Part shown: one piece after another, positions 49,501 through 51,271 of the stretch
Layout: each line of letters opens with the position of its first letter
Numbering within the stretch: the first letter of the stretch is position 1
Source of the DNA: Thalia democratica
Lineage: Eukaryota
Reading direction: 5' to 3'
NCBI GenBank assembly: GCA_965202585.1
Contig: OZ241826.1
Location: forward strand, 19,282,001-19,346,000
Length of the DNA: 64,000 nucleotides
Position numbers and translations under genes: made by a program
Notes under the pieces: model-generated
The model's input: the letters and a program-made list of their open reading frames with translations, nothing else
Told to the model about the DNA's origin: nothing
Database searches by the model: none

Positions 49501-50728
49501 AACCTTAATAATTTTGTTTATCCACTTAACGGTAACACCATTTTTTTTTAAACAACCTACCTCCTTTTTAGCTACCATATAAGCCAGATGTTTAACATCG
49601 CAAATCCTTCTGACGATGTGCCTCAAAAGTCTGACATTGAAATCTGGCACCATACACTCCAAGACTAACATCTGTAAGGTATTAATAACTGAAGTTTATT
49701 TAATGAAAGGGTTATGAATATAATCATTTGTGAGGTATAAACAACAATCTTAATGAAGATATTATCCGAATATGATTAATATTTAAAACTTTATTAATAA
49801 AATGTAATAAATAACCTACAAATTTTCAAATTAAAATCATTTTAATTATCTAAAAATTATTTGCTATAAATAAACATACTAAAAATATAACTCGTTACCG
49901 ATGGTTTAATTTATTATAAAATTTTATCATGAAATCTGGTTTAGTAACTATACTTTATTTGACTCCAATTTATTGAATAAAAAATAATACAGTTTAGTAA
50001 AACTTACATCGGAACAATTCGCTTCAATTTGATCTGCTAATTTTTCAAAAATGTAAGGACAGTTGAAGTTGATAAATTCTCCTTGTGTTGAGCGGTTTTT
50101 GATATGCCTGAACAAAACTGACAGATCCAATCTTTTGTGAGTATGATTGTAAACATCGCTTATACAATTCTATAAAAAAATAACTAGAAGATAAAAAAAT
50201 ATTGTATTAAACACACATCATTCACTTATTTCTATTATAAAATATTTAGCAAATATTTAGATTATTAACTGTTTCAGTTTGTAACCAATACAAAGTAAAA
50301 CTTTTATTCTACTGAAGTTAACTCCATTTCATAAAATGTACAAACTACCAAAATAAATATCAGTTTTATATTATATATTTAAAGTCTAAATATCCTCAAG
50401 ATTGTTATATGCAAGTTACTGTATATCTTGAAGAGTTATGGTATGTTTCATTAAAATATTAAATCTCTGAATTGGTTAAATCTTAAACTAAAGATGTACT
50501 GTAGACTTATATTTAACTACAAAAGTTAATTAAAAGAGTTGTTACCTGAAACATACTCGTATCAACAGAAAAGTTTGGGAAGTTTGAAGTAACTTCGCAT
50601 AATGTCATTGGAATACCAGTATTGACAAAACTACTCAAAGTACTTTTTAACTCTAAAATGATACTTTCTGCCACATTTTTGTTGACGCACAGAACGCAAA
50701 ATACCAATTCATCGACGTCTCTGTAAAC
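46583..50728 (-). CDS. Gene C copy 2: multi-exon gene of unknown function, at least 325 aa, 5' end not located
   Basis: complement join of 50546..50728, 50008..50169, 49561..49671, 49084..49152, 48865..48980, 48341..48403, 47798..47834, 47253..47407, 46841..46907, 46583..46597 = 978 nt. All GT-AG, phases consistent, open to EMEY*. Synonymous-rich differences from copy 1 in the MLVLECM exon. Confidence 0.75.
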
Positions 50729-50821
50729 CTGCAAGTTACAACAAAGCATTAAAATATTTTAACTTTTGTTTTAATTCCACCTAAACTTTATATTTGCAAA
50801 GTATAAATTGTTTAACCTTAA

Positions 50822-51037
50822 ACAAAAACATCGGCGAAAGTCAGCAGAGCAGAATGCCTGGACTTTCGTTTGCCGTGAGACAAGCTCAAGTTTAACAATA
50901 GTGTTGATCACGCCAATTTGATCATCAGACCGCAACGTTTTTCGGTTGTGACTGACTGATGAGTCCTAATAAGGACGAAACCGGTCTCAGTCTACCAAAA
51001 CTTGTGGTCTGATGATCGATTTAGCGTGATCAACTCT
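50822..51037 (+). mobile_element. 216-bp ribozyme-bearing insertion (Penelope-like/retrozyme-like)
   Basis: Flanked by the exact direct repeat attgtttaaccttaa (50807-50821 and 51038-51052). GC-richer than the flanks, self-complementary, and contains a hammerhead core. Confidence 0.8.
50950..50992 (+). ncRNA. Minimal type I hammerhead ribozyme
   Basis: Stem I GACUGA/UCAGUC; core CUGAUGA (50956-50962); stem II GUCC-uaauaa-GGAC; GAAA (50977-50980); palindromic short stem III ACCGGU; predicted cleavage after GUC at C50986. Confidence 0.92.
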
Positions 51038-51271
51038 ATTGTTTAACCTTAATTATAAAAGGTCATAAAGATGTAATAAAGGTTTTAAAATTTTTTTCTA
51101 ACTACAGTTCTTAAAAAAAACAATCGCAGCTAAAACTAAAATTGTGAAATTTGTTTTACTAACAACTTCAATAAGTATATACTATAAAAATCAAAAGCAT
51201 ACCCTAGTATATGTTTTGAATCGTTTTTCGATGCGGTACTTAAGGTAGTTATAACCGTAGTAAGACTTCAA

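Follow-up and report, generated by a model that had tools for sequence, protein, structure and literature searches.

A hammerhead-tipped hairpin in Thalia democratica is probably a broken retrozyme insertion with Penelope-like scars

A minimal hammerhead in a short insertion

The window, a 64,000-nt stretch of Thalia democratica DNA (contig OZ241826.1 of assembly GCA_965202585.1, positions 19,282,001 to 19,346,000), contains a 216-bp insert (50822-51037) lying between exact 15-bp direct repeats and carrying a hammerhead ribozyme on the plus strand. The first-pass annotation had described a complete minimal type I core here, and all of its parts are present in the sequence, in the type I order (with an open stem I) of CUGAUGA, GAAA and a U-H cleavage triplet:

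50938-51009 (core 50950-50992), plus strand: minimal type I hammerhead ribozyme, from the Rfam HH9 alignment and direct reading
50950-50955 (GACUGA) with 50987-50992 (UCAGUC), plus strand: stem I, 6 bp, read from the sequence
50956-50962, plus strand: CUGAUGA core, read from the sequence
50963-50976, plus strand: stem II, 5 bp, with loop AAUA
50977-50980, plus strand: GAAA, read from the sequence
50980-50985, plus strand: stem III palindrome ACCGGU, read from the sequence
C50986, plus strand: C17, at the end of the GUC triplet, with predicted cleavage 3' of it

An Infernal search with the Rfam hammerhead models, which the annotation had proposed as a check, aligned Hammerhead_HH9 (clan CL00010) end to end over 50938-51009, with 35.3 bits and an E-value of 4e-07. 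This is below the HH9 gathering score of 52 because the stem III loop is missing; the match is therefore reported at E-value thresholds only, and a default Rfam scan, run over the entire window with gathering thresholds, is empty. The pairing of the 5-bp stem II and the 6-bp stem I is backed by covariation with a second hammerhead family in the same genome, described below.

Stem III consists of the palindrome ACCGGU and nothing else, as originally described. A closed stem III is not available to this hammerhead in the nearest-neighbour energy model, where an ACCGGU hairpin would have a forbidden 2-nt loop, and by this model stem III is formable solely between two ribozyme copies and not as a monomer hairpin. 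For hammerheads with a short helix III, cleavage is reported to be poor in the monomer and efficient in the dimer (PMC7229834). When two ribozymes were folded together, RNAcofold returned a domain-swapped duplex, the double hammerhead being a crossing topology beyond what that program can score. With a single ribozyme, a stem III that needs a second one, and no partner in cis, the window copy probably lacks catalytic activity, except where RNA of the family might pair with it in trans.

The 231-nt stretch from 50822 to 51052 has a predicted minimum free energy of -102.9 kcal/mol, compared with -52.6 +/- 4.7 for shuffled sequences (z -10.7). The predicted fold recovers both hairpins that had been annotated: the long one, pairing 50890-50937 with 51001-51047 in arms of ~46 bp (given earlier as ~50), and the second at 50832-50876. 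The copy is solitary at the locus, with no other in the window.

Relative to the closest minus-strand ORF (50513-50749), the ribozyme lies in antisense and at least 73 bp upstream, in agreement with the earlier placement. This ORF starts with ATG, has 78 codons, and lies 73 bp from the left end of the insertion. It is likely the first exon of what the annotation called gene C, with the insertion in the gene C upstream region.

A dispersed family with a ~335-nt unit

A genome-wide count of copies, also proposed at the outset, showed that there are many. A 49-nt string covering the ribozyme plus stem I occurs 1358 times in the 800-Mb assembly at up to three mismatches, and its reversed control not at all, and the hammerhead is therefore not a chance arrangement. 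The 231-bp query gave 2282 first-look candidates in the same assembly, with those scored being 79-90% identical, and an internal 166-nt probe taken from eight longer copies gave 1783 candidates, many of them 99-100% identical. The flanks of 30 copies are mutually unrelated, with homology restricted to 230-590 bp, and the copies therefore do not belong to some longer element with coding capacity. Attachment to Penelope ORFs had been raised as a possibility, but because the flanks of 43 insertions are unrelated, the copies do not abut such an ORF.

The family unit is a 335-336-nt tandem repeat, with a 328-nt variant, and contains one minimal type I hammerhead. We number it (u) from the nucleotide 3' of the cleavage site, using a natural unit (L054:1039-1374) as the reference:

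u1-57: stem I 3' strand plus the 'B' segment
u58-133: hairpin domain
between the hairpin domain and the ribozyme: other sequence, ~150 nt
u~287-336: ribozyme

Unit GC content is 43.5%, in a window of 24% GC. The unit has no open reading frame, the longest stop-free run in a trimer being 61 codons, and no LTR, PBS or PPT; its only terminal direct repeats are the unit itself. Arrays reach at least seven units, and the repeats within one array are identical. The predicted fold of the unit is branched and not rod-like (z -4.3), so that the "tiny retroelement" with a rod-like fold that had been proposed does not describe the family.

One array (L052-L058; G000:C5:12358315-12363942) has ~2 inverted and at least seven direct units of 336 nt. 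Comparison of six complete direct units and one inverted unit revealed zero differences, and another array is ~0.6% different. The identity within L052-L058 would fit a single insertion event that copied one template, either repeated or circular.

Among dispersed old copies, divergence is 7.8% in the ribozyme and 8.5% in the arms (p = 0.44), and this comparison detects no post-insertion constraint on the ribozyme. The intactness of the core in the window copy (50/50 nt) is therefore compatible with chance.

Make-up of the window copy

Alignment to the unit shows that the insert is made of two partial copies in opposite orientations, with outer ends that we refer to as p1 and p2 (defined in the next section):

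50807-50821: left target-site duplication copy, ATTGTTTAACCTTAA, an exact match to 51038-51052
50822-50940, minus strand: inverted arm, the reverse complement of u~128 to u12, with p2 as its outer end (BLAST to L054:1039-1374)
50937-50940: arm junction, 4 nt (GTTT) fitting either arm, from the overlap of the two BLAST alignments
50937-51047, plus strand: direct arm, 5'-truncated and carrying the ribozyme, u287-336 followed by u1-61, ending at p1
51038-51052: right target-site duplication copy, whose first 5-8 nt also match the unit sequence at p1

In BLAST alignments to the same natural unit, window positions 50940-50824 match u12-126 with 94% identity, 50937-50986 match u287-336 with 100% identity, and 50987-51047 match u1-61 with 92% identity. 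The inverted arm includes the complement of the native hairpin of the unit (50832-50876) and the left arm of the long hairpin (50890-50937), and the direct arm reads through an uncleaved ribozyme site. The copy thus holds ~2/3 of a unit, divided between two arms, and is ~6% diverged from young units. It had been described as a 216-bp mobile unit in its own right; it is instead a single broken insertion of a ~335-nt tandem-repeat retrozyme.

This make-up accounts for the striking shape of the insert. The hairpin arms are 46 bp long because both fragments contain u12-57, and the ribozyme is at the tip because the direct arm starts ~20 nt upstream of it. The arm junction falls inside ACAAGTTT, an 8-nt self-complementary part of extended stem I and the longest stretch over which stem I makes the inverted and direct arms look alike. 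The long hairpin is thus an overlap of arms, a by-product of insertion and not the native RNA fold.

The direct repeat is exact at both ends, as first reported, although 5-8 nt of it (ATTGTT...) also match the 3' end of the element itself as microhomology. The real target duplication may be 13 bp plus microhomology instead of 15 bp.

Each two-armed insertion has one p1 and one p2 end

We compared 43 distinct insertions, and 38 of them (88%) are two-armed, with the inverted arm on the left (5' side) and the direct arm on the right. All 38 have one outer end at p1 and the other at p2, and p1/p1 or p2/p2 combinations never occur:

~u57 (u47-74): p1 outer end, ...CCUAUUGUU
~u131 (u125-137): p2 outer end, ~75 nt further, ...UUUUUUGUUGAU

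The window copy served as the query that recovered the first 30 copies, which are thus biased toward its shape; the ~12 two-armed insertions recovered with the internal 166-nt probe, which is unbiased for ends, all follow the same rule. Orientation is equally regular among the places listed for the 49-nt signature, where 16 closely spaced ribozyme pairs are all (16/16) arranged minus then plus. In the predicted fold, p1 and p2 lie on either side of a two-hairpin domain that the helix UGAUCAAC/GUUGAUCG (u41-48 with u128-135) closes, such that the two are adjacent there though 75 nt apart in sequence.

In contrast to the outer ends, the inner junctions vary, with arms joined at u91/u23, u121/u109, u163/u146, u35/u253, in the stem II loop, and elsewhere, through 1-8 nt of microhomology; at the junctions just named, the arms overlap by 1-4 nt. 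The wide variation of these positions indicates that the copies derive from independent insertion events. Target duplications are 9-16 bp in the 43 insertions (mode 13, median 13), and exactly 13 bp in 14 of the 29 with a clear duplication; in a chance control using mismatched flanks, the mean was 5.4 and the 95th percentile 8. At the ends, target and template share 0-8 nt of microhomology, and the window copy is at the upper end of this range, which is why its target seems to "mirror" the element.

These data bear on whether the hairpin-shaped form of ~216-225 bp is a propagating sub-family, in which the RNA that is copied and inserted again would itself be a rod tipped by the ribozyme. Copies L002, L006, L010, L022, L025 and L028 have the same arm junction as the window copy, as do ~7 of 26 short copies overall, and the top 30 genome matches all have that general shape; descent from a hairpin-shaped master copy would also yield a shared junction. 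We attribute the shared junction to the 8-nt self-complementary stretch ACAAGTTT, where recurrence is expected, and the common shape of the top 30 to query bias. Moreover, other copies are joined at u35/u253, u50/u243, u30/u267 or in the stem II loop, L006 combines the common junction with a direct arm of 1.3 units, the outer ends are always p1 and p2 of the unit, and the young copies that are 99-100% identical are 335-nt tandem units and not hairpins. A hairpin sub-family is therefore unlikely, and because other insertions join their arms elsewhere, the hairpin shape is made anew at each insertion and not inherited.

A resident Penelope-like element leaves similar scars

There are at least 69 GIY-YIG matches in the genome, and we examined one autonomous family of Penelope-like elements (PLEs) with reverse transcriptase motifs (YIDD), a CCHH motif and, at the C terminus, a GIY-YIG domain. 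Its open frames are 779-918 aa, the copies are 96-99% alike, and the nearest neighbours of the ORF in a language-model comparison are RVT_1/GIY-YIG clusters of animals. The loci are:

L073, G000:C8:46438000-46447999
L074, C9:31604000-31613999
L075, C1:2652000-2661999
L076, C5:59766000-59775999

The PLE insertions are head-to-head or partial tandems. All three complete insertions (3/3) show a 13-bp duplication and an inverted arm, and in each of them just one of the two ends has a tail, of ~70 nt; their plain end is at ...UUUAUGUU, and the other end is ~70 nt further. PLE insertions are known for partial tandems and 5' truncation, for a neighbouring inverted copy that is itself 5'-truncated and for target duplications of variable length, and they often have a tail of 30-40 bp at one end only (PMC8557442, citing Arkhipova 2006). 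The retrozyme insertions carry the same scars as this resident PLE, which they match also in the most frequent duplication length and in how long the tail is.

Minimal hammerheads are typical of the terminal repeats (pLTRs) of PLEs (PMC8557442), Xenopus retrozymes resemble PLE pLTRs (preprint 10.64898/2026.07.22.740005), and there are many PLE copies in this genome. The insert might thus be a fragment of the pLTR of an autonomous PLE and not a separate non-autonomous element. We regard this as very unlikely, as homology among the 30 loci stops after 230-590 bp with unique flanks beyond, no ORF adjoins the copies, and the unit forms its own arrays of at least seven identical repeats. Furthermore, no hammerhead lies within 3-4 kb of the ORFs of the examined PLE family (cmscan E <= 0.01, 40 kb), and BLAST of this one family against the retrozyme unit gave no similarity beyond a stray 53-bp match 3.5 kb from the ORF. 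As the retrozyme and the examined PLE share neither sequence nor ribozyme, we infer the mobilising partner solely from the scars.

Long inverted arms flanked by a direct repeat could also suggest a MITE or foldback DNA transposon enclosing a hammerhead, or a product of LINE-mediated twin priming. LINE-1 twin priming produces 5' inversions. Both explanations appear very unlikely for this insert. The arms are non-terminal and unequal (119 and 111 nt, with 46 bp in common), duplications range in length from 9 to 16 bp, and multi-unit tandem insertions exist; there is also no poly(A) or LINE-type 3' tail, and an 88% share of two-armed insertions with a tail at one end only is a PLE and not a LINE trait. 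We dropped both the MITE and the LINE readings on the grounds of duplication length, end structure and the absence of poly(A).

A proposed route of insertion

Taken with the PLE-like scars, the make-up of the window copy suggests that a non-LTR hammerhead retrozyme of ~335 nt probably inserted here through target-primed reverse transcription of the PLE type and was dead on arrival. This upholds, from the sequence evidence, the broader claim of the first-pass annotation that a non-coding, ribozyme-bearing retroelement of Penelope or retrozyme type was probably mobilised in trans. We envisage that a staggered cut with a spacing of ~13 bp would expose two DNA 3' ends. With plus-sense retrozyme RNA as the template, one of these ends would prime cDNA synthesis at p1 and the other at p2. 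Microhomology, often within self-complementary stretches of the ribozyme, would then link the two cDNAs, which are of the same sense; in the window copy, joining at the self-complementary stem I would give a hairpin with the ribozyme at its tip.

Longer insertions have arms of more than one unit, which means that the template can be longer than a single unit; for these arms it may be a multimeric or circular RNA, or there may be template switching. Rolling-circle copying would fit the arrays of identical units. In one insertion, adjacent units differ at 4 positions and the arms at 2, and given these 2-4 differences, template switching or heterogeneous multimers may instead be involved.

We also speculate, with considerable doubt, that the two 3' ends of one staggered cut prime at two fixed sites of one folded RNA domain, and that the retrozyme mimics the initiation domain of a PLE in structure but not in sequence. 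The position of p1 and p2 at the base of one predicted helix (u41-48/u128-135, closing a ~75-nt domain) could explain the one-of-each rule. If two-site priming is true, the thousands of retrozyme insertions are a natural readout of the PLE integration mechanism.

Family sequences in RNA libraries

Contigs from a marine metatranscriptome tile the unit with 0 mismatches, and one of them contains a head-to-tail joint. These contigs are compatible with transcription of the family; being assembled, they are blind to RNA ends, to strand, to circle versus multimer, and to RNA versus carried-over DNA. None of the RNA runs searched contains the window locus, and we found no sign of transcription or constraint for the window copy. 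Runs X6-X8 contain 37-63% of the words of the locus. Unit words are present in three marine metatranscriptome runs from one study (X1, X2 and X5) and in runs X6-X11 from four organisms, with shares of 0.32-0.88. The presence of these words suggests that the retrozyme family is common to related pelagic animals or populations.

Relationship to known retrozymes and retroelements

The window insertion is nothing out of the ordinary among animal non-LTR retrozymes, which were described in 2020 (Cervera & de la Pena 2020, PMC7229834). Like those metazoan elements, the family consists of non-coding tandem repeats within the ~170-400 bp range, with a type I hammerhead in each unit, a moderate GC content (43.5%, below ~45-50%), no LTR, PBS or PPT, and target duplications of more than 4 bp. 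As for the published elements, family sequences occur in RNA libraries, which in this case means contigs alone. The window copy differs in having two partial arms instead of a full unit, and the ribozyme is of the minimal form seen in PLEs and amphibians, with a palindromic stem III, whereas the canonical invertebrate form has a stable helix III. Tunicates are not named in the retrozyme papers searched (including PMC7229834), and a literature search directed at tunicates returned no paper on tunicate retrozymes.

The hammerhead resembles the dimer-dependent ribozymes of newt and axolotl satellite 2 and of PLE pLTRs, in which helix III is too short alone and the palindromic loop can pair with a second copy. 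It differs from them in that the window copy has no second ribozyme in cis.

The retrozyme insertions resemble those of PLEs (Craig et al. 2021, PMC8557442) in their 5' truncation and partial tandems, in the adjacent inverted copy that is also 5'-truncated, in having a tail at just one end and in duplications of variable length; with the resident PLE they share a 13-bp duplication and a tail of ~70 nt. Unlike PLEs, the retrozyme has no ORF, and its tail is ~75 nt compared with the published 30-40 bp; the PLE family that we examined has no sequence similarity to the retrozyme and no hammerhead. The inversions recall those of LINE-1 twin priming, in which an inverted 5' piece is joined through microhomology to a direct 3' piece between target duplications. 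However, the internal site where the inverted arm of the retrozyme starts is fixed and lies 75 nt downstream of the end of the direct arm, there is no poly(A), and the two-armed form is the rule (38/43) and not the minority.

As a decayed and truncated copy, the locus itself is of little weight. The family extends the known distribution of animal retrozymes by a lineage, and it is linked to PLEs here by insertion architecture, whereas the published derivation of vertebrate retrozymes from PLEs was argued from sequence similarity and co-occurrence (preprint 10.64898/2026.07.22.740005). What is new is modest, namely that the p1/p2 rule is strict and that the resident PLE matches it; having one p1 and one p2 end in every two-armed insertion is a simple, countable constraint on models of PLE integration.

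A second hammerhead family

The genome contains a second dispersed hammerhead family, represented by L077-L082 (for example, G000:C1:63623120-63626141), with the ribozyme near position 1500 of each locus. Its members have the same core and stem II as the retrozyme family but different flanks, and a 22-nt flank marker has 1796 genome matches. All six pairs of stem I are changed, from GACUGA/UCAGUC to GC(C/U)UGC/GUAGGU, with every position paired, and this compensatory change supports the hammerhead fold. The family first became apparent in the read lay-out, where loose ends appeared to either side of the ribozyme.
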